A DNA stretch of 64,000 nucleotides from Sphaerodactylus townsendi (lineage: Eukaryota): the NCBI RefSeq assembly GCF_021028975.2, contig NC_059437.1:58094001-58158000 (forward strand). The letters run 5' to 3'. Under the pieces are notes generated by a model. It worked only from the letters and a program-made list of their open reading frames with translations. It ran no database searches and was not told where the DNA came from. How positions within the stretch are numbered: the first letter of the stretch is position 1; every line of letters starts with the position of its first letter. Below, in pieces: positions 10,588 to 64,000 of this stretch. The position numbers and the translations under genes were made by a program.

Positions 10588-13298
10588 GAAGGCAGCCCTA
10601 CTGGGATCCGCATGAATACTATGTCGATACATTACAACTTCCTAGGCCTCTGGGTGAAGCTCGAATTGTAATAAAAGGCCAACAACCAGCTAAAGATCTG
10701 GCAGCTGTGAAATCTACCATAATAATAATGAAGAACTATACAGAAGAGATGAAAGGATTACAAATAACTTCAAAGAAATGTTATTGAAAAAGAACCTGCA
10801 ATGCTAGAAAATAAATTCAAAGCTGCACTGAAAGCAGTTAGAATAAACACATCATCAGGATTATTAATAGCCACAGAAACCGAGTCCGTAAAATTTTTAA
10901 CAAGATTATGCCAACAAATACGGATTACAAAACAACGGCCCATTGACTGAAGACACTGAATTTACCCTCCAGTTCTGAAAAAAAACTTCAACTATTGGAT
11001 CATCACATAAAGAGATGTTCAGAATCTTATGACAGACTGTTGCCATAGAGGAAATGAGAAAGGCCGGCTGTTTAAGAATGATCAGGAGAAGGAAGAGGCA
11101 CTAGAGATCATGTTTAAAATTTACAGTGGTTACAGGCACATTCTGAAAGAATTTCAGAAGAAAATCAGCTTGTGATTTGTAGATGCAGCAAAGCTTTTGA
11201 CTGTGTGGATTGTGAAAAGCGATGGTTGGCTTCAAGAGAAATGGGTGGGCCGCAATATCCGATTGTTTTGATGCACCATCTACACTCTGGACAGGAGGCT
11301 GCTGTTAGAACAGAATATGGAGACACGAAATGGTTTCCAATTGGCAAAGGTGTCAGACAGGGCTGTATTGATCTGCCTGTTTCTTCCACCTGTATGCACA
11401 TTGTATCATCTAGCTTTCACTGTGTTCTCTTCTGTCTTTTTAATCTATTGTCTGTATTGTTGATGGCATACCTTGCCTTAGGGGCCTTCAGTGTTTGCAG
11501 TGTTTTCTGCTCCTGCAAACCTAGTCCTATTGTGTAACAGACTTCCCTCTATGCTCCACCTCTGAAGATGCCAGCCACAGATGCAGGCAAAATGTTAGGA
11601 ACAAGATCCACCAGACCACGGCCACACAGCCCGGGAAACCCACCAGAACCACTAGTCCTATTGCACTGTTCACTTGATGCTTTGTGCTGTCTGACGGTTG
11701 GTATGTTTTGTAATCTGCCTCCAATCTCAGCAAGAAAGGCAGGCTGTAAATAAAGCAAATAAATAAATACATCCCAAGCGATGCCTGCCTGGTTAACTAC
11801 TCAGGTGCAGGAAACCCTACAAAGTAAATGGCTTCCTTTAAATGGAAGGTTTCCCTGATCAAGGAGACCGGAAACGAGCAGAAGTTCTAGCAAAGAAAGA
11901 AAAAGTTAGCTGACAATAAGAGGAGTAAAACGGGGGGGTTGAGAGGTGGGCGGCTGGAAACAGCCAGCCAAACTTCCAGCATTGCCCTCAAATATACGTC
12001 ACAGGAGCGGCGGCGGCGGCGGCGGCGGCAGCAGCAGAGTGGCCGGGAGGCGGCTGGACCTTCGGCTGACACTTGCGGAAGGCGGGCAGGCAGAGGGCCG
12101 AAACACGGCGGCGGCGGCGGCCGCATGGACGCGGGGGGGGGGGGCGGTGCGTGGGGGGAGGGCCCTGTGGAAAACGTGGGGCCGCCGCCGCCGCCGCCTC
12201 CCCGCCGGCCCCACTGCTTTCGGAAAGGGGGTCTGAAGAACGAGTCGGAGGATGCAGAGGACAGGCCATGAAGTCCGGCGGGGACTACCCGTCAAGGGGG
12301 AACTGCCCGACGCCGGAGGGAGGGCTCTGGAGGACGCCCACCCCCACCCCCACCCCCACCCCCGGCCCGGTGCAAGTGTCCAGCAGGCAGCTGCGCCCCA
12401 CAGTGAGGCCCTCCTGGGCACGACTCCAGCCGGCCTCTGTGGCGGCCGCCGGGTGGCTGCGGAACTCAGCCCCTCTGACTACACCGGCTTTGAAAAGGGC
12501 CCCCCGAGGTGAGCGAAGCCTCTCTTGGCTCGGCCCTGCCCGGCCTGGCCTCGGGGAATGTTTCTCGCGTTGGCCGGCGGGAGGCACTTCGGGGGCGGCG
12601 GCGGGGGCGGGAGGTCTTGCTGGACGGCGAAGAAGGAGCTGGCAGCCCCGGCCCGGCTGCAGCCACAGGGGGGCTCTTCCGCCTCGCCCTCTCCTCTCCC
12701 GCCACACAGGGGCCCCGGACGGACGGACGGACGGCGGAAAGAGCCGAGCGCCTCCAGCCCCCTCCTCCCCGGGGAGGCCGGCCCGAGTCCCTTCCCCACC
12801 GAGGTCGGGGCAGCCCTTCAGCGATGCCCGCCTCCTCCTCCGCCGCCGCCGCCGCCTCCTCCCCGCACCCTCGCGGCCCCTTTCTGCCGGCGCTCGGCCA
12901 AGCAGGGCGGCACAGTGGTGGGCAACCCTCCGGGCCCTCGCTAGCGACCGTCCGGGCCGGTCAAGGCCTTGGCCCCCACCAGGCGCCTCTTCCCCGCGGC
13001 AGGACGCGCCGTCGGAAGCCGCCGCCCGGGAGGCCGCCCGTGGCTCGCTTGCCCAGCGGCCGCCTGCAGACGGGGCGCCGCGCTCCCGGAGGTTGGGCCC
13101 GGGCTGCGGAGAGGTTGGGCGCGCGCGGCCCCGGCGGAGAGACGCGCGGGCCGTCCCGGGGGCCGGCAGGGGCCAGTCCCGACTCACCCGGCTCAGGAGA
13201 GGCGGACGCGGCGGGGGCTGCTCGGCGTCCCCTGCGCTGCCACGGCGCGGCCCCCGCCGGAGCCTCCGCGGAGCAGGAGGAGGCGCCTGTTGCTCCAT
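4971..13298 (-). CDS. TTC28: Tetratricopeptide repeat protein 28, 5' part; join(13188..13298,4971..5249); gene continues left beyond the window
   Basis: Exon 1 MEQQAPPPAP...PPLLSR (111 nt, donor GTGAGT) joins in phase 0 to exon 2 IPLLGS...LSKAEFVEKVRQSNQACHDGDFHKAVALYSETLGADPQNCILYSNRSAAYMKTQQYDKALDDAIKARLLNPKWPK, which closely matches the N-terminal TPRs of vertebrate TTC28 as recalled. Confidence 0.95.
6840..6970 (+). mobile_element. 5S rRNA-derived SINE head, degenerate (related pieces near 6485-6545 and 30810-30900)
   Basis: ATCTTGTCAGACCTCAGAAGGTAAGCAGGGT...CCTGGTTGGTACTTGGGTGGGA resembles the 5S internal promoter region, with many mismatches. Confidence 0.6.
8690..10130 (-). mobile_element. 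RTE/BovB-clade LINE fragment, interrupted by a CR1 3' end
   Basis: ATVRTEYRETEWFPVGKGVRQGCVLS...GGRNINNLRYVDDT. Confidence 0.85.
8935..9320 (+). mobile_element. CR1 LINE 3' end (young family)
   Basis: [11 protein letters not shown]...RKHFFTQ; GTTCTTAT terminal repeat; nearly identical to 48615-49011. Confidence 0.9.
10295..10377 (+). repeat. (GAT)n microsatellite
   Basis: Direct reading. Confidence 0.98.
10375..10730 (+). mobile_element. Two tandem 5'-truncated R4/Dong-like LINE 3' ends (about 10375-10482 and 10587-10730)
   Basis: About 90-bp near-identical duplication; the second copy reads KAALLGSA*ILCRYITTS*, resembling the C-terminus of R4/Dong ORFs; (AAC)/(AAT)n tails. Confidence 0.6.
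10508..10586 (+). repeat. (TAA)n microsatellite
   Basis: Direct reading. Confidence 0.98.
10740..11400 (+). mobile_element. RTE/BovB-clade LINE fragment
   Basis: SKAFDCVD...QEAAVRTEYGDTKWFPIGKGVRQGC. Confidence 0.82.
11530..11652 (+). mobile_element. Penelope terminal-repeat fragment with a decayed hammerhead
   Basis: Same family as 57700-57822, but CGAAACG reads CAAAATG (CpG-type transitions). Confidence 0.7.
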
Positions 13299-14480
13299 GC
13301 GACGGCCGGACCGGCGGCGACGAACGGAGCCTGGCCTGGCCCCGCCCGCACTCACGCCGCCTCCACGTCCTCCCCGGCCGCGCCGAGCCAGCCCCGCTCC
13401 CGCTCCCGCTCCCGCCCCGGCGCCATCTTCGGACTCCGGCCACCGCGCGGAGGGAGGGGCGCCTTGGCGCTGCCCCGCCCCGGAGGGGAGAAGGCAAGAA
13501 GGCGGGCGGCCGCCCCCTGCCCTGGCCTGCCCCGCTCTTGCCGCCTGCCGGGGCCCCGGGGCGTGCGGGCGGCCGGGCAACGGCGCGGCCAACTTTTCGC
13601 CCTGCGGCAAGTTGAGGCGGAGAGTTTGCCCAGCGGAGGCGCCGAGTCCGTCTCCCCCGGCGGCCGGCCCGAGAAAGGCCTCCGGCGCGCATCCCGCTGC
13701 AGCCTTCTGCGGGGACGCGCTGCCTCGGGGGGGTGGGGGGGGAGCGGCGGAACTGGGCAGCCCGGCCAGGGATTGTCCGGCGGGCAGAGGGGGAGCCGCC
13801 GCCGCCGCCGCCGGGATGGGGGGGGGGAGTTAGTTGCTGACCGACGGCGAACGCCGTCGACCAGGCCCGCGCGGAGCAGCTGCCGCCACCAGCGCCACGA
13901 ACAAGGCGAGCAAGATCTCCAGCGGCCCCGAAGAAGGGCGGGAGGGGCCCTCCGGGCGCTCTGCCACTGGCCCAGAGACGCGCTTCTGCATCAGCCCCCC
14001 CCCCGTCCTCGCTCCCTCCCGGCGCCGGGGGGGTCTGCGGGCGGAATGGGGGGAGCAGCCGGCAGTGGAATGAGACCGGCCCGCCGGCCAGCGCTGCAGC
14101 TCTTCTCCCGCCGCCCAGCACGGGGCGCCTCGCCTGCTCCCCCCGCCGTCGGTCCACTTCCAAAGTGCGGGTCCCTCCAAGACGAGGACAGCAGCTCCTG
14201 GCTGAGCCGGCCTTTAGTGGGTCTGGAAGGTGCCGCTGGGCTCCCCCGAGGCTGTCCCCCCCGTCCCCTGCTGGATCCCTTCCCACTCCGGGAGCCGCCC
14301 CGCCTTCCCCGAGCTCAGCTCCTCGGGTGAATTCGCGCAGCTCTCGGGTCCTTGCGCTGGGCTTTCCTGGCTCCCGTCCCCCACCCCCCCTCCGCCCCTT
14401 GGGCATTCCCGCGTCTCCCCCGTTGCTCCCTCCCAGTGGGCCATCCAGCCATTCCGTGGGGCAGGCAGGTGAGGGCTGCT
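11950..14480. promoter_or_regulatory. CpG island spanning the TTC28 promoter and exon 1
   Basis: Very GC- and CpG-rich, with (GGC)n/(GCC)n tracts, against a CpG-depleted background. Confidence 0.9.
13188..13298 (-). CDS. TTC28: TTC28 coding exon 1
   Basis: ATG at 13298 in a CpG island; 37 codons beginning MEQQAPPPAP (human MEQSPPPAP); donor CGG|GTGAGT. Confidence 0.85.
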
Positions 14481-49500: not shown

Positions 49501-50722
49501 TAGTACTACCTGCTTTGGCATTCCACATTTAAAATAAATACGTGTTTCCTGTGGTCCATCTGCCGCCTGTTGCATTAGGTGCCCCAACCAGCCCTGCCTT
49601 CCTCTCCCGGATGCGCCCGACGCCAAACCTGCGATGTGGACTTCCAGCTCTGCCCTGGCGTCTTCCTGGTCTGTCGCTGCCAGTTTCTCGTTGATCTCCA
49701 TGATTTCTGAGAGGAACTCCGGGTCTGCCTCGCTGTCGGCCCCCGTCTGCAACTCCACCCCACGCAGCTGCAGCTGGACACGAAGAGGAACACGGCTGGG
49801 CTGAGAGCGGTGGGGCTGCCTCGTGGGGGGGGGGGGGGCGGACGACGGCGACACTCTCCCCAGGCAGGGGTCCAGGTGGGGGCTGGGGGGCCCTATGTGG
49901 CCGGGGGTGGGGGGACGCCGCTTACCGCCAGAGAGGAGCTGCTGCTGGAGCGCCTCCCCCCCGCCCGCCCGCCCCCTCCCTCGGTGCTCCCGGGGAAAGG
50001 GGGGCTCTGTCGGCCCTGGGGGGAGCGGGGCGGTGCTGCTGCGGGCCCGGAGGCGGCGGCGGCGGCAGCACCAAGGGCAGCTCCCAGGGCGGGCGGGCGG
50101 GCGCCGTTCCCTTTGGCTGACTCACCAGGTAGAGCCCGCGGCTGAGGGGGCGCCGGAGGGTGTCGTAGGCCTCGTTCACCAGCGCCGAGTGCTGCTCCGA
50201 GAACTCCCGCTCCGCCTGCAGCGGGAAAGGGGGGGGGGGGGGGGGGGGTCAGTGCCGGGAGGGAGGGAGGGGGGGCCACCTTCTCCTCCTCCTCCTCCCC
50301 CCCCGCCCCTCCCTCCCTCCCTCCCTACCTGGCTGCTTTGGCCGAAGCCGTCCGGGTGGAGGCGGCGCTGGAGGCTCCGGAAGCGCCGCTGCAGCTCGGC
50401 CTGGTCCAGCCGGAAGGTGCGGGGGCTGCGGGGAAGGGGCGGAAGCAGAGCGGGGGGGGTCACCGGGCCGGAGGGGGAGGGGGAAGGCAGCCCCCCCCCA
50501 CCCCCGGCCACCCCCCCCCACCCACCATCCGAGCAGGCGGAAGCAGTCGGCGCCGCGGTCCGGGGGCTGGAGGGCGCGGCAGGCCGGGCAGAAGCGGCAG
50601 GCGGCGGCGTCGTGGAGAGCCAGGCCGCAGCTCCAGCAGGCGCCCGAACCGCGCGCCCGGCAGCCGGCGGGGACCGCCCTCCAGAAGCCGCCCCGCCACC
50701 CCCGCCACCGCCACCGCCACAT
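46497..50722 (-). CDS. HSCB: Mitochondrial Fe-S cluster co-chaperone HscB (HSC20), 222 aa; join(50526..50722,50329..50425,50126..50215,49629..49773,47301..47348,46497..46588)
   Basis: Arg/Trp-rich presequence, CWSC and CPAC metal-binding motifs, J-domain HPD ([10 protein letters not shown]), NEAYDTL...[20 protein letters not shown]-terminal [11 protein letters not shown]. 669 nt, all GT-AG and in phase. Confidence 0.96.
47301..47348 (-). CDS. HSCB: HSCB exon 5
   Basis: [15 protein letters not shown]; 48 nt; TTCTAG| and |GTAGG. Confidence 0.93.
47378..49011 (+). mobile_element. Young 5'-truncated CR1 LINE (RT to 3' end) in HSCB intron 4
   Basis: [57 protein letters not shown]; candidate TSD GTTCAGGTT at 47369-47377 and 49009-49017. 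Confidence 0.93.
49629..49773 (-). CDS. HSCB: HSCB exon 4
   Basis: LQLRGVEL...[16 protein letters not shown]...HIA; 145 nt. Confidence 0.95.
50126..50215 (-). CDS. HSCB: HSCB exon 3
   Basis: [30 protein letters not shown]; 90 nt. Confidence 0.95.
50329..50425 (-). CDS. HSCB: HSCB exon 2 (HPD motif)
   Basis: [32 protein letters not shown]; 97 nt. Confidence 0.95.
50526..50722 (-). CDS. HSCB: HSCB exon 1
   Basis: [10 protein letters not shown]...CWSC...[11 protein letters not shown]...; 197 nt; donor TG|GTGGG. Confidence 0.9.
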
Positions 50723-50834
50723 GGCGCCGCCGCCGCCGCGCCTACAGCTCCCGGCAGCCCCTGGCGCGCCACGCCCCCTTCCCGGCGCCCCTCGCGCGCC
50801 GCGTGTGCCGAAAGCGCGGGAAGGCAGGGGCGCC

Positions 50835-51021
50835 ATGGCCGGGCGGGAGGAGGGGGCCGTCGCCTGCTCTTCCTCCTCCTCCTCCTCCTCGCTGAGCTCC
50901 CTGGAGACGCTGCCCGCGCAGGAGACGCCGCTGCTGCCGCCCATCGCCGAGGAGGAGGAGGAGCCCCCGCAGCCGCCCTGGGGCCGCCTCTTCGCCCTGG
51001 CCCCCGGGTTCCGCCCCTTCG
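50835..51021 (+). CDS. CHEK2: CHEK2 coding exon 1
   Basis: GCCATGG start; MAGREEG...[12 protein letters not shown]...[15 protein letters not shown]; 187 nt. Confidence 0.88.
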
Positions 51022-54000
51022 GTACGCCTCCCCGCGGTGGGGGTGGGGGGGAGGGAGGGAGGGAGGGGGGCGACACGTGCCCTCGGGCAACCTCCAGCCT
51101 CACCGGCGCTCCCGGCCCGGGGGCGGCGCCCGCAGCAGGCGAGGAGATGGACTGCCCCCCCCCCCCCCCCGCAGAGTGCGCGAGCGCGGAGTGCTGGTTC
51201 GGCAGAGACCCCGGCTGCGGCTACAGCTTCTGCGGGCCGGACCTGGCGCAGACGGAGCTCTACCGGCAGTACAGCAAGAGGCACTTCCGCCTCCTCAGGG
51301 TGAGCGCCGCGCGCAGGAGGGCCGCGCCTGTGGTGGGGGTGGGGGTGGGGGCGCGCGCCCGGCGCCTCTGGTGACCCGCCCTCTCTCCAAGGAACCCGGA
51401 CCCAGGAACTCCCACGTGGCGTACCTGGAGGACCACAGCGCCAATGGCACCTTCGTCAACGACCGTCTCGTCGGGAAGGGAAAGAGGCTGCCCTTGACGC
51501 ACAACGCCCACATCGCCCTGGCGCTGCCCCGGAACAAAGGTGAGGCTGCGCTTCCCTGATGCGCTCCCGTTATCAGTGCTCAACTAGTTTAACAAATAAA
51601 GTATAATGTCAAGGTATTCCTACCTCCTCCGTCACTCCCTTCCCTCCCTGGAACATACAATTGGAGACCCTTATGCTTGCTATATTAAAAACACCGGATA
51701 CATGTACAGGGAGCAATAACCTTCCCTCCTCCTTCCTCCCTCTCACTACAACCCCCTGTACTAACCCCCCCCCCCCGACAGATAATTATGGATGACTTAG
51801 AAGTTGCTCAAGTGTTCAGACCCCAACTGATCTGCAGCTGCTGAGTTCCTGAAATTATTGACACCCCCCCCCCTTGTAGTGGTGGCTGCTGGATTAGTGA
51901 AATGGGAGCCAGAGTGTCCATAACCACAAAGCTGCCCTCTTCATTTATTTTTCCAGTGTTTGTATTTTCTGACCTGACAGTGGACAGTCAGTTAGAGTAT
52001 CCCAAGGAGCTCAGAGAGAAATACATCATCTCAAAAACTTTGGGAAGGTAAGTGAGAGAGGTGTTCATTTTGCAGGATGCATTTTAGCAAGAGTTTGTTT
52101 TTCTTGCTACATTCCCTGTGTGGTGCAGTACGTAGCAAAGCAGTTCCAAAAGCATTTTTATTCTCTTTCATGGGGTTGACTGTGGAGGGCAAACCCATCC
52201 AATGGGCCACTGTGAGAGCACTGCTGGTCTGTTCCCAGGTAACATACCACCGGGGGTGGGGGGGCATGCCTCCCTCTGTGAGGTTCAGTCTGCACTCAGA
52301 GTGTGCTGGAGCCCCTGGCAACACCCACCATTCAGGCAGTGGTGCCTGATGATGTCCCTCTGAGGGGTAGATCCGTGTGCATCCAACCGCTGCCTGCTGG
52401 TGTAGCCCTTGTACCATTCCTGCCCGCCTCCCCACCCCGCAGCTGAGTGCCAGGGGTCAGGTAGAAAAGGCCCATCAGCAGCCTCAGTAGAGTCACATGG
52501 CAGGAGCCCTGGAGCCAGCACACTTCAGGGCGCCCCACTGACAAGTGCCTGAGCCTCAACTCGTAGCCAACTTGCTGCTTGCCAGGCGGAGGGCAGGGAG
52601 CAGAGCTCCCAGCAAAGGGGCTTCGCACACCCCTCCATAGCCTGCTTGGGAAGGGAGCTCTGATGCCCTCACCAGCTACGTGTGGCCAGCCTGAGAGCAT
52701 TGGACAGGTGGGCATGATCTGGCATTGCCAGGGCTGCAGGTTCAGTCCCCACACAGGAAGAGGCAAACCACGAAGCGGGGGATGGCATCACAGATGGGCT
52801 GCCCCAGACACTTTATTGGTTTCTTTAAAAGGTTTCTGTGCTCCTTTGCCACCCAGTTTAGCACATTCTGAGGTGGAGCAAGGCCAGCCAGAGAGGGGGG
52901 CAGCTCTAGGCCCTTTGCAGCAGGAGGGGGACAGAAGTGAGGTCCAGTGAATGGGCTTGCAAGTCAAGGGACAGGGTGCGAGCTGCGGGGGGTGGGGGGA
53001 TGCCACTAGTTGCCCCCCTTGCTTGCACACATGCGCACTGATGTCTTTGGCTGTGAGCAGTCTGCCTTGTTGAGATGGCCCCTGGGACAGGCGGAGGCAG
53101 CTGGATCCGGTCCAGGAGTCAGGCGTGGTGCTCTGGCTGCAGGAGTCATCTGACCCCTTGGGTGGTGAGCATCTGAGGAGTCAGGGTGTCTTTAAGCACT
53201 GCACACGCTGTGACTCTTGTGACCTCTCCCTCACTGTCTTTTGTGTGGCTCTGTTGTTGAAGATTTCTGCGTTCCCAGCGAGCTGTTCTTTATGTTTCCT
53301 GCCCCCCCCAGCACCTAGCAGGCCACCCTTGCTGCTCAGCCCCCTCTTCAATGCTATTGCCAGCTTCTCCCTTCGGCCCACTGCCCCCACCTCTGACACG
53401 CTGACCAGTTTGGTTCCATAAGGAGCATCCAAGCCAGGGCTGCTTTGATAACTATTGTGATGTGTAGTAGGAATCAAGACAATTACTCTCTCTTAGAAGA
53501 AGAAGAAGAAGAGTTTGGATTTATATCCCCCCTTTCTCTCCTGCAGGAGACTCAAAGGGGCTGACAATCTCCTTGCCCTTCCCCCCTCACAACAAACACT
53601 CTGTGAGGTGGGTGGGGCTGAGAGAGCTCCGAGAAGCTGTGACTAGCCCAAGGTCACCCAGCTGGCGTGTGTGGGAGTGTACAGGCTAAACTGAATTCCC
53701 CAGATAAGCCTCCACAGCTCAGGCGGCAGAGCTGGGAATCAAACCCGGTTCCTCCAGATTAGATACACGAGCTCTTAACCTCCTACGCCACTGCTGCTCT
53801 TAGAACAAATACAGGCATTATTCTACTGGCAAAACTCTAAAATACAGACTGAAGCACTAGGGTTGCCGGACAATAAAAAAAAAGAAACAGAAAGAGGACC
53901 GACTTAGGTTGAAACTTGCCAGTCCTGAGCCTCTCAACTTCCCTCCCCTCTGGAATGTTCAAACCAGTGCGTCCTTTGCACGGTCACACATTTATCCACA

Positions 54001-54982
54001 GAAGGAACAGTTCCTTTTCAGTCTGCCCTCCCCCATGCATGAAAGGGGGAGGGCTGGTCTTGCCTCATTTGGGCCTTGAGTTCTGACAGTAACATCCTGC
54101 CAGCACCTACTCAGCCCAATGGGGCGGGGGAGGAGAAGGAGAAGAGTTGGATTTATATCCCCCCTTTCTCCCTGTAAGGAGACCCAAAGGGGCTTACAAA
54201 CTCATTTTCCTTCCCTCCCTTTCACAACAAACACCCTGTGAGGTAGGTGGGGCTGAGAGAGCTCAGAAGAACGGTGACTAGCCCAAGGTTACCCAGCTGG
54301 TGTTGGTTGGAGAGTACAGGCTAATCTGAATTCCCCAGATAAGCCTCCACAGCTCAAGCAGCAGAGCAGGGAATCAAACCCGGTTCCTCCAGATTAGAGT
54401 ACACCTGCTCTTAACCACTACGCCACTGCTGCCCCTCGCATACCAAGGAGATCCAGGGTTTTAATTCCTGGTTGTGAACACCATGCCTGTCCTGGGCAGC
54501 TTCAGAGTGGCTGCCCCAGTAACTCCACCAGCATCAAGAAATCTCAGTCGTCTTTGGCTCTCATTCACGACCCCCCCAGATTTGATGAAACGTCCAATAA
54601 TGGCCGATGGGGAGTGCAGGAATTTTCACTGTCAGAAGGGGGATGCTGGACAGGTGGCTTTGAAGGTGTGTGAGAGCTGCTCGCACCTGCCCCTTTGCCT
54701 TTCCCTTCCTGGTTGGCCTGAGAGTAGCCAGGTGGCATTCTTTGTGGGGGAACTTAGTATGTCTTTTCTTCCAAAGATTCACCATCTAAAAAACCTTAAA
54801 TGTTTTGCTAGTGGCGCCTGTGGGGAGGTGAAGCTGGCATTTGAGAGGAGCACCTGTCGCAAAGTTGCCATCAAAATCATAAATAAGTCGAGGTTTATTA
54901 CAGATGCTTTGCCACAGATTGTAAGTATATACTAATTTATCATATATATTTATATACATACGTACATACATACATACATACA

Positions 54983-55014
<32 letters not shown>

Positions 55015-58000
55015 CTCACACACACTGAAATCTGTGGCTCCATCTGTGCAAACTTAAATCTGCACATTGGAGCCACAGAGGGAAAACAAATAGTTTTTCC
55101 TGCAAACTTGGACCCCACCAGGTTTGCAGAAAAGTCTGAAACTAAGGGCAGGAGGTCTGTAGGCACCAACAACACACCATTGCTCCTCCATTGACTGGCG
55201 GGGGCTGGGGGGGAGGAGCAAGAGTAGCAATTCTCCCTGGCCAAGAGGAACAAGCAAAAAGAGAACAAGGGAGGCAGCCATGGGAGAAATCAGGGCCTCT
55301 GTGCTCTCCCCCCCTGAAGTAAAGGTGCAAGCAGATGGGGAGGAGGAGGCATAGCTAGCTCCCCCCTTACCCCTGGACTGAAAATGCAAAGTCTGTTCCT
55401 GCGTTGACTTCCTGACTCTCAGGCACAGATTGGCAGTCACCGCCCAGAGCCCCTTGGGGATGGGGCGGTATATAAGTTCAAAAAATAAAATAAATAAATA
55501 AATAAATTGCCAGAGATGCCCCACAGCCAGTGCACGTGGACTCTCAACGCAGTGGTGTGCAGTTGGAGCCCAGCAGTCGATTGGAAACAAGAGGGAGCCC
55601 GTGACTGACAAAGAGCGGCAGACTCTGAGCGCCTGAGGCTGATGCTGCATTTGGTGCACTGACTGCAGCTGCCCAAGGGCAAAGTAGCCAGTCAGAAAGC
55701 ACTGGCAGATCCAAGAAAGCAAGGCACACTTCGGTGGACCAGCCCCTCCCCTACACAAAGGGCCTGTGGTTCCCCCCAATTAGGGAAATGAGCAGGCAAT
55801 AATAAGGGGGGGGGGGATAAAGATCAGTTTCCAGCTTGACATTGAAATTGCGCCTCTTTAGTGGCTCTAATTTGTTTTCGCTGGTGTGTCACCCTAGCCA
55901 AATGGAGCCCCTGTGAAGACTGGACAGGCCTGATTCCTGAGTGGTGTGAAGGCTCAGAAATTTTGGGTTCTTCTGGGTCTTCTGCTTTGAAATGTACCTC
56001 AGATCGCGTTGCCTTCTGCTCTGACTCCACGGGCGAGGGCTTCAGACTGGTCTTTGTGTGGTCTCAGCTTTCACACTGCTGCTCTCAGTGCTGCTCTTAG
56101 GTGGATGCGGCTGATCAGATGCTCTGCAAATAACTGGACGTTCTGCTTTTTGAAACCGGCAGGACAAGCCTTATAATGTGGAAACAGAAGTGGAGATTCT
56201 GAAGAAAGTTGACCATGTGAGTGTGTCCATAAAACTGTATCTACTTTGTTATTTGACTTTTGTTCGTCTCTTCCTCCTTATTGTCAATAAAGCCTTGGTT
56301 ATGGTTCTGAGAAATACTGTTTCAGTTTTCTTCTGTAAAAGTAATTGAAGAAGAGCTGATTTCATGCCCCACTTCTGTCTACCTCAGGGCGTCTCAAAGT
56401 GGCTGACAGTCACAGTCCCTCCTTCTCCCCTTGTGAGGTATGTGAGGCTGAGAGACTTCAGAGAACTGTGACTGTTCCAAGGTCATCCAGAGGCCCAGGA
56501 GTGGGGAACCCAACCTGATTCTCCTGATTAGAGTCCAGCTCTCTTAACGGTGACACCCTGCTGGCTCGCCAGTGATGCTTGGTTTACACAGCATAACGTG
56601 CCAGTTGTGTCCATGGTTCTTACGTTGGTGGTAACCTTTTCATTTGTATTGAGGTTAAGAACATGAGAAGAGTGCTGCTGGATCACACTCGGGGTTCATC
56701 TAATCCCGCATCCTGTTCTGCACACCAGCCAACCAGCTACCGTAGAGGCCAAACAAACAAGACACAGTTTCCCATATCCACTATAGACCTAAACAAGGAC
56801 ATTACCATATTGCCTGTCCAATTTTCAGTCCCTTCCTTCTTAATGTCTAGCCTGGAGTTGGCCTTTTTCACTGCTACCTCACATTTAGTGGACGTTTTCA
56901 TCAAGCTTTCTACTACAACCCCAAGGTTCAGCCAACATCATAATGTATCAAGGATTAGAATTTTTATTCCGATATGCATCACCTTCCACTGAACTCCACT
57001 TGCCTAGTTCAGAGAGGGATCCTCCTGTAGCTCTTTGTGGTTCACCTTGGGGTTTGTCATGCTGAATGATTTCCTATGATCTGCTAACCTGGCTACTTGT
57101 GAACAAATGAAATAGCACCAGTCCTTATGGGATCCCACTGCTTACTTCCCTCCACTGAGAGAACCGCCCAGGTATTGCTGCTTCCCGCTGTCACATTTTC
57201 TAATCTATAAAAGGGGTTGACCCCATGATTGCTGAGCTTAAGGGGAATCTTTGGTGAGGAGCCTTCTCAAAAGCTTTTTGGAAATCCAAGTAGAACACCC
57301 TTATCCACGTTCTTGCTCAAAGAACTCCAAAAAGTTGGTGCGTTCTTACAGAAGCCATCCTGAATTCCCCTCAGCAGGCCTCATTCCTCAGTATCCTTAT
57401 TAATTATTTAATAGTAGGTTCTGCTTATTTGCCTGGAAAGATGTAAGGCTAGTTGGCTTGTAAATCCCTGAATCTCATCTGGACTTCCTTTTTAAAAAAT
57501 TGGTGACATTTTCTCCTTTTCAGTCATTTTCTTTATTAAATTTAATAATCTGCCAGGGAGGCCAATTTTAGTGACAAGCTACATATTCTTGTTCACAGAT
57601 GAAGAGTTTCACATCTGAGCTACTTAAGAACCCTCAGGTATATGCCACTGGACCTGGAAGCTTATTAGTTTCCACTTTGCTCAGAGTTTGGTTGCATCAG
57701 TGTGTACAGACTTCCCTCTGTGATACACCTCTGAAGATGCCAGCCAAAGATGCAGGTGAAACGTTAGGAACAAGATCCACCAGACCACGGCCACACAGCC
57801 CGGAAAACCCACCAGAACCAATTAGTTGCCTCAATTTGACTCCGTTCTTCAGACATCCATGCCTAAAATAGTGGCCGTGGTGTGGATATATGCCTCACAT
57901 TTTTCACAAGTTCTCTGAAGAAAAGCTGCAAAAATGAAATCCATTTGTGGTTTCATCCCCTTGTCATTTTCTCTGAGGGTGACGTGGATCTCTTCCTGTC

Positions 58001-59301
58001 TTTGCTTTCTACAGCCCTGCCTGATAAAAATTATTGACTTCTTTGAAGGAAACGATTTTTACATTGTGTTGGAGTTGTAAGTAACCTATTTGAATGTGTG
58101 TTTCTGTATATTACTTCTGGGAGGGCACTCAAGCCCAGCAATTTAAATGCAGATGATTGAGGAGTTTTTCTGGGAATTTCTGACCTTGAATTGTGGTTTT
58201 AAAAAATCCTGCTTAGGCTGGCTTGTCCTGAGTCAGACCACCAATCTGTCAAAACCAGTCCTGTCTCCTTTGACTGGTAAGGATTCACATCATCCACTAC
58301 CTGATCCTTTGACTAAAGACAGCAGGAATTTAATTAGAAATCTTTTGCATGTAAACAGATACTGTACTGAAGAACTGTGGCCACCTTCCCTGGATTATTG
58401 GGGAGTAGGTTTAAAGAGAGGGAAATTATAAACAGCCTGTAGCGGGGTGCTTTTTAAGTTTGGTCCTTGGAAAAAACAGCCTTGATACAGATGTCACATT
58501 CCAATCATGGCTCAGTGTTACTTGGACAAAATTAAAGGGTCGTGTTTCCTTCTCTTGTTTGCAACCCTGTTTTTTGCAATTTCGGTGCAGTGTCAGAGGA
58601 GGAAAGGGGTTTTGATTGTTACAGCAAAATGTCGCTGTTCAGAGGGCTTTCCGTAAACAGGGTTTGCCTTTCTTCCTAACTGACTTCCAAGACTAGTTCC
58701 AGAGCCTTCTATGCTGCCTGAGGAGAAACAGATGAGATTTAAGCAAAGCAGTCTTTCAAGCCAAGAAGGGGGAGGCGGGGAAGAAGGCCCTTCCTCCCGC
58801 TCCTATCTTTGCTTGTGGTTATTTGTTCATAAACACTGATATGTTGCGTCTCAGGCCTGGCTTATATTTGGGTTGCAGAATGTTTAAAAATGCATCTAAA
58901 ATGATAAAACAATGAAATACCAACAAATTACGTTTGGAGTCAATACATTGGAAGCCATGATCAGATGAGGAAGATTTTCACTTAAATGCCACCCATGAAT
59001 GAAAATCTGAAAAGGGAACTTCCACTGAGCAGGGTCTTGTCCCTGGGACTCTTCTGGAGGGTGGGGGTCTCGGGGAAATGTCTTCACAGTCTTGTGGGTT
59101 AATATGGCTGCTAAAAGCTTCTCTAGGTTGAATCAGTGATCTGAATTGTTCTTGGGTACAAACTGCTAAGAAATGGGTCTTCCTCTGTTCTTGCTTTTCA
59201 GGATGGAAGGGGGGGAGCTATTCGATAGGGTTCTGCCCCCAGCAAGATTGAGTGAAGCGATCTGCAAGTTTTATTTCTACCAGATGCTGTTGGCTGTGCA
59301 G
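50835..59301 (+). CDS. CHEK2: Checkpoint kinase 2, 5' part; join(50835..51021,51175..51299,51392..51539,51957..52047,54812..54920,56163..56216,58015..58076,59202..59301); remaining kinase exons not found in the window
   Basis: FHA domain ([28 protein letters not shown]), then kinase N-lobe ([62 protein letters not shown]). All GT-AG and in phase. Confidence 0.96.
51175..51299 (+). CDS. CHEK2: CHEK2 coding exon 2 (FHA)
   Basis: [12 protein letters not shown]...[10 protein letters not shown]; 125 nt. Confidence 0.95.
51392..51539 (+). CDS. CHEK2: CHEK2 coding exon 3 (FHA)
   Basis: [23 protein letters not shown]...RNK; 148 nt. Confidence 0.95.
51957..52047 (+). CDS. CHEK2: CHEK2 coding exon 4
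   Basis: [29 protein letters not shown]; 91 nt. Confidence 0.95.
53495..53797 (-). mobile_element. tRNA-derived SINE (Squam3-like)
   Basis: Same family; flanking direct repeat CTCTTAGAA. Confidence 0.82.
54132..54432 (-). mobile_element. tRNA-derived SINE (Squam3-like); older copies also at about 6560-6820, 33283-33850, 56345-56565, 59845-60070
   Basis: Shared body and A/B boxes. Confidence 0.78.
54812..54920 (+). CDS. CHEK2: CHEK2 coding exon 5
   Basis: [25 protein letters not shown]...PQI; 109 nt. Confidence 0.95.
54954..55010 (+). repeat. (TACA)n microsatellite
   Basis: Direct reading. Confidence 0.95.
56163..56216 (+). CDS. CHEK2: CHEK2 coding exon 6
   Basis: [18 protein letters not shown]; 54 nt. 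Confidence 0.95.
56660..57690 (-). mobile_element. Degenerate CR1 fragment in CHEK2 intron 6
   Basis: CR1 3' terminus at the left end; reverse-strand YLDFQKAF remnant near 57270-57292. Confidence 0.7.
57728..57768 (+). ncRNA. Minimal hammerhead ribozyme variant in a Penelope terminal-repeat fragment (about 57700-57822)
   Basis: CCU-CUGAAGA-U-GCC...GGU-GAAA-CG-UU-AGG. Confidence 0.62.
58015..58076 (+). CDS. CHEK2: CHEK2 coding exon 7
   Basis: [20 protein letters not shown]; 62 nt. Confidence 0.95.
59202..59301 (+). CDS. CHEK2: CHEK2 coding exon 8
   Basis: [11 protein letters not shown]...[13 protein letters not shown]; 100 nt. Confidence 0.95.
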
Positions 59302-61127: not shown

Positions 61128-64000
61128 GTTTTTTTAATTCTTTATCTTTATCTTTATTAACCTTTAATAGGCATAAATAGATCAAGATTTACACAGACAC
61201 ATTCTTCAGTCTCAAGTATAGTTCAGCAGCAAGGAAACAGACCACATAACCTGACGGTTGACCCCAAGGGGCTCAAATCACTTCAGATTCCTTTTTTTAA
61301 AAGAAACAATTTCTGACAAATGACAACAAATAATTCCCTACATCAGTTAAGTGCAGAAATACAATCCAATTGCAATATAAAATTACAATAAAAATAGATC
61401 TTGTTTAGTAGAAGTGGTTAAAAGCAAATGATGATACATGGCAATAGGTATCCCTACCATGCAGATTAAGACAGATTGGAGAGCGAATACCTATCTTTTA
61501 TATAAGAAGTTCTATCACGTTTGTCTTTATGTGTAATCATATCTTTATACTTTAAAAACTTTGGTCTCCCTGTACCAAATAATAAAAAACCAATTTGGTT
61601 TAGCAAGGTACTGAAGGTATAATTATATGTATATATTTAAAAAAATACACAGTTAAAAGTAATAAATATATGAGAATAAATTGAAGCACTTTCTAAAGTA
61701 GTTTGTCAGGAGTATAGAGCTGCGCCATAATGGTGTTGTATGAGTACGTTGTAACTCTCAAGAGAAAGCATGATATGGCAACTTAGTAGGGTTAGAAATT
61801 TTTCCTGCGCCACTAGTAGGCGCAAGTGTGAGTCAATCACAGAGGCCAACATCTGCATTTTATTTGTTCTGAGCACTCTAGGAGGGACATGGATAAAGAG
61901 GAGTCCAATGGAGCCACAACGACAGTGTCTTTGTTGTTTAGAATCTTGGTGGATACCCTTCCGTTGAAGGTAGGAGGCCTGAAGAAGGAAGACTGTTGAA
62001 TCCATGGCTAACATAAGTGACGGTGGGCAAGCGGTAAAAATGATAGCTGCTAGGTAATTGGCTAAAACTCCATACTCTGGGAAGCTGATGCCCAAAGCTT
62101 TGAGGAGGAACAGACTGGAATTTTGGATGAATGAGAAAGCCTACAAGTTCCATGGTCTTTCGGTCTATAGTCCGTCTTGGTTCTAACTTGAAGAGAAGAT
62201 AAAGTTCTCATTGCTAAGTTTTTGAAGGACAGTTTGGTCCTATTCAATGTCTCCTAATCTTTGTTGGTAATAGCCCTTGGACCCATTTGGAGCAGTAATT
62301 ATCTCTTTAAGTAGGTGTGTTGGTAATATACGTCATCCCTTGGATCTAAAAGTGGATCTTGAGCCAGAATTTTTTATTGTGAAAATCCAAGCTAGGGTTT
62401 TAGACTAATGGATCCAGTCCAATTCAAGACACAGGGAAGTGAGTGAAGGTGATACTTTCAATGAGGACTCCATTACTCCTTCCTCAGAAATGATGCTTGG
62501 ATTAGGATCAATTTCACAGGTTAGAAAGCATTGATCCATATGGGGATCCCAGTAAGGAGTCTCCCTTTGGAACTTCACCTTTGCTTGGAAAATCTCTCAG
62601 AAGGGCAAGCTTAATGATGGATTGAAAACCCTTCCCGTAAATAGGGTAAGAGGCATTACCTGATGGCAGCCTTTTTCGGAAGTTATGGAGCAAGATCTTT
62701 GTAGTGACCACTGGAAATTATAGTAAAATTTAGGGCCTAAATATTTAAAGATTTGACCTTGGATTAAGATGGATGTTATTGATTTTCCATGTCATCTGTT
62801 TCAGAGTTAGAAAGAAAACTACTTATTTTGGATCTTTCACTGTAGATTAACCTTCAGTTCCAGTTTCTATATCACAGTAGTTGAAGAATGCTTTTAAATA
62901 TCCTCATATAAGGCCGACTCTGGCTCTTCTGCGATAGAATAGGCAGTATCAAATTAAATACAAGTAGCAATGGAATAGGATGGCCTCACTGCTTTTCGGT
63001 GGATGTCCTTCCTACCGTGTTAGAGATAATGGTCTCTTGCAGGTCATTTATATATATAAGTTAAATAGGTGCTTGAGGGCAGCACACACCCTGTTGAAGA
63101 AACTCCCTCTTGGGGAAGGTGGGTATTTTTGTTGAGAGAGTGAGTCGAATGGTCTCCAACTTTTACCTGGCAGGAGGTTGCACTGTACAATTTCCGAATC
63201 TAGCATGAATAATAAGCGAGGTGGATCCATGTCCATTTGAATTCTAGCTTGGACCAGAGAAAGGGTCCTAGAGACACTGTGAAGGCATTACTCAGATCCA
63301 AAATGCACTACGTATAGTTCTCTTTTGTCCTTGGTTGGTATATTTGTCCACAAGAAAGAGAGAGAGGGGAATTAGAGACAGTGGTCAGTTGTGTAGATTT
63401 CCGGCTCTAAATCCACCCTGTTAATTGGACCTATAATCCCTGTTTTTATTTTGCCATATCATTAGCTTTGTCTATAAGATATTCTTTTGCATAGAGTTCC
63501 CTAAAGAGTTGATAAGAAGTAAGCTGATAGGTCTGGAAGTTCTCTGGTCTGTTACGTTGTGGTCCTTTCTTATGGATTTCACAAGCACACTAATTTATTG
63601 AGGAGCCAGGCTTCAGGAATTCATTCCATGCCTGGTCAATGAAGGAGAACAACTTGACTAAAATAGGGGTCCACCAGTCGGAGGTGTGTTCAAAGAATAC
63701 CTACTTGAGGATCCTGGATCCGGACCTAAGGGCCTTATTTTTTTTTCTTTAGTGATGAATTCAAATGATGCTGCATGTCCCTCTGAAAGTGTAGGAGGAT
63801 AGCCATGGCGGAATGTTGTCCCCTGGTCCAGCTTTCTCCCATATATCAGGATGTACTATGAGGATCCACGAAGAGAACTTCGAGAAATAGATTAGTCCAT
63901 TAGAGGTCTGGTTACATTTGCAGCAAGTAATGATGATTTGGAAGGTCCGTTCCACTCATTGCCCAGAAATTGTTCTGGGTGTTATTGATTTTAGGGCATC
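61128..64000 (-). mobile_element. Non-LTR retrotransposon RT region, heavily frameshifted (clade uncertain, possibly RTE-X-like)
   Basis: A-rich tail at about 61128-61160; reverse-strand remnants KAGPGDNIPP, TTDHCL, DLSNAF, LWSKLE. Confidence 0.55.

Follow-up and report, generated by a model that had tools for sequence, protein, structure and literature searches.

A gecko CHEK2 orthologue with Ala at the Thr68 position and no SQ/TQ motif before the FHA domain

The textbook first step in the activation of vertebrate CHK2 is the phosphorylation of Thr68 by ATM, which leads to FHA-mediated dimerisation. SQ/TQ cluster domains (SCD) are usually defined by at least three SQ or TQ motifs within 100 residues, and the FHA domain of Chk2 prefers Ile or Leu at position +3. 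The engineered human T68A protein keeps its kinase activity and shows a weaker response to irradiation (PMC2963420). In one complementation screen in yeast, single changes of T68 or of other SQ/TQ sites were tolerated (PMC11349238), whereas a second yeast map scores human T68A as a complete loss of function (PMC11639082). Orthologues from yeast, fly and worm lack a conserved Thr68 and have other SQ/TQ motifs (PMC11349238). CHK2-family kinases without an SCD exist, namely C. elegans CHK-2 and yeast Mek1, and the activity of C. elegans CHK-2 is independent of ATM and ATR (PMC10113158). Positive selection on chek2 has been reported in a study of the p53 network (PMC6406535), in line with the long squamate branches described below.

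The locus described here lies in a window of 64,000 nucleotides, which is the whole stretch of Sphaerodactylus townsendi DNA that was analysed (contig NC_059437.1, 58,094,001 to 58,158,000), and positions are counted from its first nucleotide. The features are as follows:

50329..50722, reverse strand: HSCB exon 1, with the zinc-finger region and the start of the J-domain in the minus-strand translation, head to head with CHEK2
Between the HSCB and CHEK2 start codons: shared GC-rich bidirectional promoter
50721..50834, forward strand: in-frame 38-codon extension, used by the NCBI models X1 and X2
50835..51021, forward strand: CHEK2 first coding exon, 62 residues, opening with ATG, its translation identical to residues 39-100 of the public protein P0183
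50916..50918, forward strand: Ala codon GCG at the human Thr68 position, in the codon run CTG CCC GCG CAG, from the alignment and the contigs
50925..50936, forward strand: Thr-Pro-Leu-Leu, with a gecko-specific Thr (ETL in other geckos) and a 6-nt insertion in S. townsendi
51022..51174, forward strand: CHEK2 intron 1, 153 nt, in frame and stop-free
51175..51299, forward strand: CHEK2 exon 2, start of the FHA domain, with WFGRD (Arg117) and YSKRHFR (Ser140, Lys141, His143)
51392..51539, forward strand: CHEK2 exon 3, FHA core, with NGT (Asn166, Thr168); Pfam FHA E = 1.2e-06
51957..52047, forward strand: CHEK2 exon 4, end of the FHA domain and linker
54812..54920, forward strand: CHEK2 exon 5, kinase glycine loop and the VAIK lysine (Lys249)
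56163..56216, forward strand: CHEK2 exon 6, helix C including Glu273
58015..58076, forward strand: CHEK2 exon 7, kinase N-lobe
59202..59301, forward strand: CHEK2 exon 8, hinge and helices D-E; later exons lie past position 64000

The first coding exon encodes the N-terminal disordered region, with a Ser run written as (TCC)n, the LSSLET motif, an acidic run and a PWGRLFAL motif. The eight CHEK2 coding exons of the window are all free of stops and bordered by GT-AG, and their peptides are exact ordered substrings of P0183, the public S. townsendi Chk2 protein. Eight coding exons were read in the window, the part of the gene past position 64000 was judged from the P0183 protein model, and the exons were searched singly and unjoined, so that whole-protein comparisons used P0183. 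This protein matches the Pfam FHA and Pkinase models (Pkinase E = 4.2e-72) and the human CHK2 chain 3i6w (E = 3.9e-194). Exon 1 searched alone against Pfam matches no family, and it gives a weak match to the human CHK2 chains 1gxc and 3i6w over its PWGRL part.

A homologue search with a turtle query returned the tuatara and no squamates among the best 120 matches listed, and the squamate homologues were found with the stop-free frame at 50169-51371 (residues 223-377) and then with P0183. In the gene tree P0183 groups with geckos inside squamates, and CHEK2 orthology is supported both by this tree and by the head-to-head HSCB neighbourhood, as in Heteronotia. No second S. townsendi cluster was seen among the P0183 homologues, and the gecko protein appears to be the product of the sole CHEK2 gene of the species.

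Other parts of the window carry features of their own. Intron 4 of CHEK2 contains two copies of a SINE-like element (53470-54400), visible as repeated open-frame peptides, and intron 5 has an (ACAT)n-type microsatellite at 54925-55050, just past exon 5. A run of 191 N bases occupies positions 313-503 of the window. A second very GC-rich block (77% GC) at 12001-14000 is probably another CpG-island promoter.

The gecko gene shares with human and amniote CHK2 its orthology, the exon structure across the eight exons seen, the head-to-head arrangement with HSCB, the FHA and kinase architecture, the FHA pocket, the catalytic residues and the activation-loop residues Thr383 and Thr387. It differs in lacking Thr68 and any SQ/TQ motif ahead of the FHA domain, where mammals, birds, turtles, crocodile and tuatara have 5-8. 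It also differs by a squamate-wide change of Pro to Leu in the catalytic loop: HRDLKLEN stands in place of HRDLKPEN in 18 of the 19 squamates sampled (about residues 348-355 of P0183, in an exon past the end of the window), and Phrynocephalus keeps the Pro, as do tuatara and every other tetrapod sampled.

A MAFFT alignment of 32 CHK2 proteins from tetrapods puts the S. townsendi Ala in one column with human Thr68, and the flanks of this column are invariant, with LSSL(E/D)T upstream and Leu71 downstream. The codon GCG differs from ACG by one transition, and it is followed by CAG, so that the position reads Ala-Gln (50916-50921) and not Thr-Gln. The preliminary description of this DNA had placed Ala at the Thr68 position through the LSSLET motif, with a codon one base from ACG, and had found no SQ or TQ before the FHA domain or in a 38-residue upstream extension, with the FGRD, YSKRH and NGT motifs and the splice sites intact. 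All of this holds: the translation of 50835-51023 matches the peptide it gave, the aligned column is that of Thr68, the codon is read at 50916-50918, and the motifs are present with GT-AG borders. SQ and TQ are absent from the 69 residues that precede WFGRD, from the 38-codon extension that begins at ATG 50721, and from the in-frame intron 1 kept by public isoform X1. S. townsendi CHK2 thus has no N-terminal SQ/TQ cluster domain. The numbers of SQ/TQ motifs before the FHA domain in the groups compared are:

Non-squamate amniotes: 5-8
Other lizards: 3-6
Snakes: 2
Other geckos: 1-3
S. townsendi: 0

The 6-nt insertion in S. townsendi creates a TP site with Leu at +3, and the Thr of Thr-Pro-Leu-Leu is, speculatively, a candidate for a substitute phospho-acceptor.

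Mammals, birds, turtles, crocodile and tuatara keep the Thr-Gln pair at the Thr68 position, and so do seven lizards and amphisbaenians (Hemicordylus, Zootoca, Rhineura, Varanus, Elgaria, Pogona and Phrynocephalus). Each of the five sampled gecko genera (Sphaerodactylus, Euleptes, Gekko, Heteronotia and Paroedura) has Ala, as Ala-Gln or Ala-Pro, and seven snakes have Ala-His. A caecilian and two amphibian-like sequences have Val or Ala at this position. Geckos branch first in the gene tree and snakes are nested among the lizards that keep Thr, so two independent changes from Thr to Ala, one in geckos and one in snakes, are the most parsimonious reading of the tree. The snake proteins share with the gecko protein the Ala and a reduced cluster, of which only TQPSQ is left. 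They differ in that the next residue is His and not Gln and in that two S/TQ motifs are retained, and their change is an independent event because the other lizards and amphisbaenians keep Thr-Gln.

Within geckos, the alignment shows that the change from Thr68 to Ala (ACN to GCN) predates the split of the sampled families. The Ala codon is GCG in S. townsendi and GCC in Gekko japonicus and Heteronotia, a difference that would be expected of an old fixed change. The preliminary description had tied the loss to this lineage and had proposed that CHEK2 N-termini be aligned across geckos and other squamates. That alignment dates the Ala to before the sampled gecko families, and a lineage-specific mutation is rejected, since Ala is gecko-wide and recurs in snakes. 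S. townsendi shares with other geckos the Ala, the inserted Thr in QETLPPI and the short N-terminus, whereas the loss of the 1-3 SQ/TQ motifs that they retain, together with the extra Pro-Leu that makes the TP site, distinguishes it. Only this final step in the loss of the motifs is peculiar to S. townsendi.

In S. townsendi the two SQ motifs seen in Heteronotia were lost through point substitutions and not through missing sequence, since MASQGSQAS in Heteronotia corresponds codon for codon to MAGREEGAV in S. townsendi and MASQGSQ and MAGREEG pair one to one. In Gekko japonicus, the genomic exon has two SQ sites behind an assembly gap. The NCBI Chk2 model of this species (L001, 3001-5300) opens with an 18-residue exon upstream of the gap; the exon that follows the gap carries an ATG itself (MAEKGPP...), besides the two SQ motifs, so that the published N-terminus of Gekko japonicus Chk2 is probably an artefact.

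CHEK2 has a 5'-to-3' gradient in GC3, with values of 0.98, 0.98 and 0.88 in exons 1-3 and 0.44-0.64 in exons 4-8, and exon 1 has 76% GC. Both ACN to GCN and CAG to CGG or GGG run in the weak-to-strong direction. Together with the high GC3 of exons 1-3, this makes GC-biased fixation a plausible, non-adaptive explanation for such substitutions in an exon so close to the promoter.

The remainder of the protein retains its functional residues. Arg117, Ser140, Lys141, His143 and Asn166, which are the five phosphothreonine-binding residues of the FHA domain, are all kept, as are the kinase catalytic residues Lys249, Glu273, Asp347, Asn352 and Asp368. The T-loop autophosphorylation sites Thr383 and Thr387 are Thr in 32 of 32 sequences. 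At near-invariant FHA and kinase columns S. townsendi has two unique substitutions, and other species have between zero and seven. Its root-to-tip length is 0.61, within the lizard range of 0.55-0.68, and root-to-tip lengths of CHEK2 in squamates are about twice those of other amniotes. Against Gekko japonicus, dN/dS (Nei-Gojobori) is 0.17 for exons 2-8 (225 codons, summed exon by exon) and 0.42 for exon 1, pairwise values that span both lineages since their split and could mask a recent relaxation on the Sphaerodactylus branch. Taken together, these comparisons show purifying selection on the FHA and kinase domains and on the T-loop sites.

A pseudogene or decaying gene is rejected by the intact exons, the GT-AG borders, the conserved residues and the dN/dS of exons 2-8. 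The view of the preliminary description that the gene does not look decayed is borne out by the same exons, residues and ratio and by the lack of excess unique substitutions. The sequence thus points to a kinase that works rather than to one in decay, and the DNA-damage response may be either rewired independently of Thr68 or weakened by a hypomorphic Chk2, the two options that the preliminary description offered. It had suggested dN/dS on the kinase exons as a check, for which the value for exons 2-8 now stands, and pseudogenisation of downstream exons as a sign against its reading; these exons are intact.

The explanation that we favour, with moderate confidence, is that S. townsendi has an intact CHEK2 orthologue whose N-terminal SQ/TQ cluster has eroded to zero, and that its product is a functional CHK2 without the route from ATM through phosphorylated Thr68 to the FHA domain. 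The kinase would still work, and ATM would be unable to prime it by the canonical trans-dimerisation of pThr68 with FHA. Activation would most likely still end with trans-autophosphorylation of Thr383 and Thr387. Motif inspection suggests two ways in which the molecules could be joined. One is an FHA domain that binds a phosphothreonine of another protein. The other is a threonine outside an SQ/TQ context in the conserved LSSLET...ET(P)L segment, the candidates being the invariant Thr of LSSLET and the gecko-specific Thr of QET, which is followed by Pro-Leu-Leu in S. townsendi.

The closest experimental counterpart is the engineered human T68A protein, which has the identical residue change at the same aligned position. 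It differs in keeping the other six SQ/TQ motifs, and the gecko protein had a long time for compensatory change. C. elegans CHK-2 and yeast Mek1 have FHA and kinase domains and no N-terminal SCD, as is the case in S. townsendi. They are meiosis-specific kinases of distant lineages, whereas the gecko protein has kept the conserved LSSLET motif next to the lost site.

A wider proposal, which we put forward tentatively, is that squamates uncoupled CHK2 from ATM priming twice, in geckos and in snakes, and that Sphaerodactylus completed the process. It would be a vertebrate with a single CHK2 that is activated without any N-terminal SQ/TQ phosphorylation of the PIKK type. Activation would instead use the conserved LSSLET/ET(P)L threonines as targets of some other kinase, or the docking of FHA to a second phosphorylated protein. 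If true, the case would serve as a natural experiment on how CHK2 is activated independently of Thr68.

A hypomorphic protein or one with a narrowed role is the strongest rival, although we consider it rather unlikely. Under such a scheme gecko CHK2, and that of S. townsendi most of all, would have lost ATM-dependent damage signalling and would be kept for ATM-independent meiotic or oocyte surveillance or for mitotic tasks, as C. elegans CHK-2 is, with somatic signalling running through ATM-p53 or ATR-CHK1. The absence of any ATM-consensus site before the FHA domain fits this scheme, as do the loss of function of human T68A in one variant map (PMC11639082), its reduced irradiation response in cells (PMC2963420) and the meiosis-specific, ATM-independent character of the SCD-less CHK-2 and Mek1 (PMC10113158). 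The roughly twofold faster evolution of CHEK2 in squamates and the positive selection flagged on chek2 in the p53 network study (PMC6406535) point the same way. The segment LSSLET...L around the lost Thr is nevertheless still invariant, which suggests that the region still has a function, and both the fully conserved phosphothreonine pocket of the FHA domain and the dN/dS of exons 2-8 speak against this scheme.

A relocation of the ATM wiring, in which ATM or ATR would act on S/TQ motifs elsewhere in the protein, for example in the C-terminal LLTQMND and KRATQTP, comparable in function to the second SCD of yeast Rad53, is improbable. TQ does occur at residues 494 and 532 of P0183, and KRATQ or KRSQ is present near the C-terminus in three of the five geckos and in no other group sampled. 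However, sauropsids with a retained Thr68 have variously Ser, Thr or Ala in LL(S/T/A)Q, Heteronotia and Paroedura lack the C-terminal motif, and neither of the two motifs has Ile or Leu at +3. The extreme C-terminal S/TQ reads KRATQTP in Sphaerodactylus and Euleptes and KRSQTPS in Gekko (P0183, P0184, P0188).

Still less probable is a gap in the annotation, by which the true transcript would include one more coding exon, upstream or alternative, that contains SQ/TQ motifs. Human CHEK2 has a separate 5' exon, and the reading frame in S. townsendi is open upstream as far as 50169. An open frame is, however, expected at 70-77% GC, and this one is free of SQ/TQ within the 38 codons to ATG 50721. 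The HSCB start codon (50722-50720, reverse strand) lies only 113 bp from the CHEK2 ATG at 50835, on the opposite strand, and the spacing is the same in Heteronotia binoei, where the HSCB and CHEK2 coding starts are 118 bp apart and the neighbour carries Pfam HSCB_C. ATG 50835 aligns codon for codon with the Heteronotia CHEK2 start and is the canonical start position of other geckos, and three independent public models are without such an exon. Any coding exon missed upstream would have to sit inside or beyond HSCB, a position that makes it unlikely.

The extension itself is probably noncoding and part of the 5' UTR or the promoter. Its ATG at 50721 shares bases with the HSCB start codon of the opposite strand, is absent in Heteronotia and has a weak context with C at -3, against G at ATG 50835; on these grounds its use as coding sequence is judged an annotation artefact. 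A third public model (UniRef, 498 aa) begins at 50835. Public isoform X1 (587 aa) is a product of retained intron 1, which adds 51 Gly/Pro-rich residues just before the FHA domain.

On the other side of the shared promoter, HSCB exon 1 is split by a 100-nt GC-rich GT..AG segment (50426-50525, reverse strand) that shifts the frame. Its excision joins DCFRLLG to CPRTFRLDQ, which we take to match a continuous motif of human HSCB. The segment may be a small intron without a counterpart in human HSCB, or an intronised insertion.

Three sets of contigs bear on the base itself, all of them Logan contigs and apparently of DNA, with joints that are low-complexity mis-joins and not splices. The contig of run X1 spans 50470-51150, its sole listed difference being a 3-nt insertion behind 50724; that of a second S. 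townsendi sample (run X3) covers 50915-50948 with the codon unchanged; and that of a relative about 5% diverged (run X6) covers 50794-51028 with only C>T at 50915, a synonymous change in the preceding Pro codon. A check of base 50916 in sequencing data, proposed in the preliminary description, therefore returns GCG in the contigs of X1, X3 and X6. Although the exon has 76% GC and a (TCC)n run where some contigs break, an assembly or sequencing error in GC-rich DNA is effectively refuted by the contigs of two S. townsendi samples and of the relative, which all read GCG, and by the Ala of four other gecko genera, encoded by GCC in Gekko and Heteronotia. Some variation is seen beside the codon: run X3 carries GAGGAGGAG inserted behind 50948, which gives three extra Glu in the acidic run, and the contigs of X1 and X3 have an additional CGC behind 50724 relative to the assembly.

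A full-text search of the literature found no account of Thr68 loss in geckos or snakes and no vertebrate CHK2 described without N-terminal SQ/TQ motifs, and searches on gecko and squamate CHEK2 and on amphibian Thr68 yielded nothing specific. The interpretation of clinical CHEK2 variants leans on the Thr68 step, and p.Thr68Ala is disputed between assays (PMC11639082 versus PMC11349238). Ala has become fixed here in two amniote clades that are old and rich in species, while the FHA pocket, the kinase and the motif beside the site stayed under constraint, which suggests that the Thr68 step is dispensable or replaceable in vivo. Caution is warranted with phospho-Thr68 antibodies and Thr68-centred models in squamate regeneration or cancer-resistance work. 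Geckos, with 0-3 SQ/TQ motifs, and snakes, with two, offer natural proteins for finding the alternative route, and the change would amount to a clean natural experiment on the activation step of CHK2, placed in a fast-evolving disordered segment.
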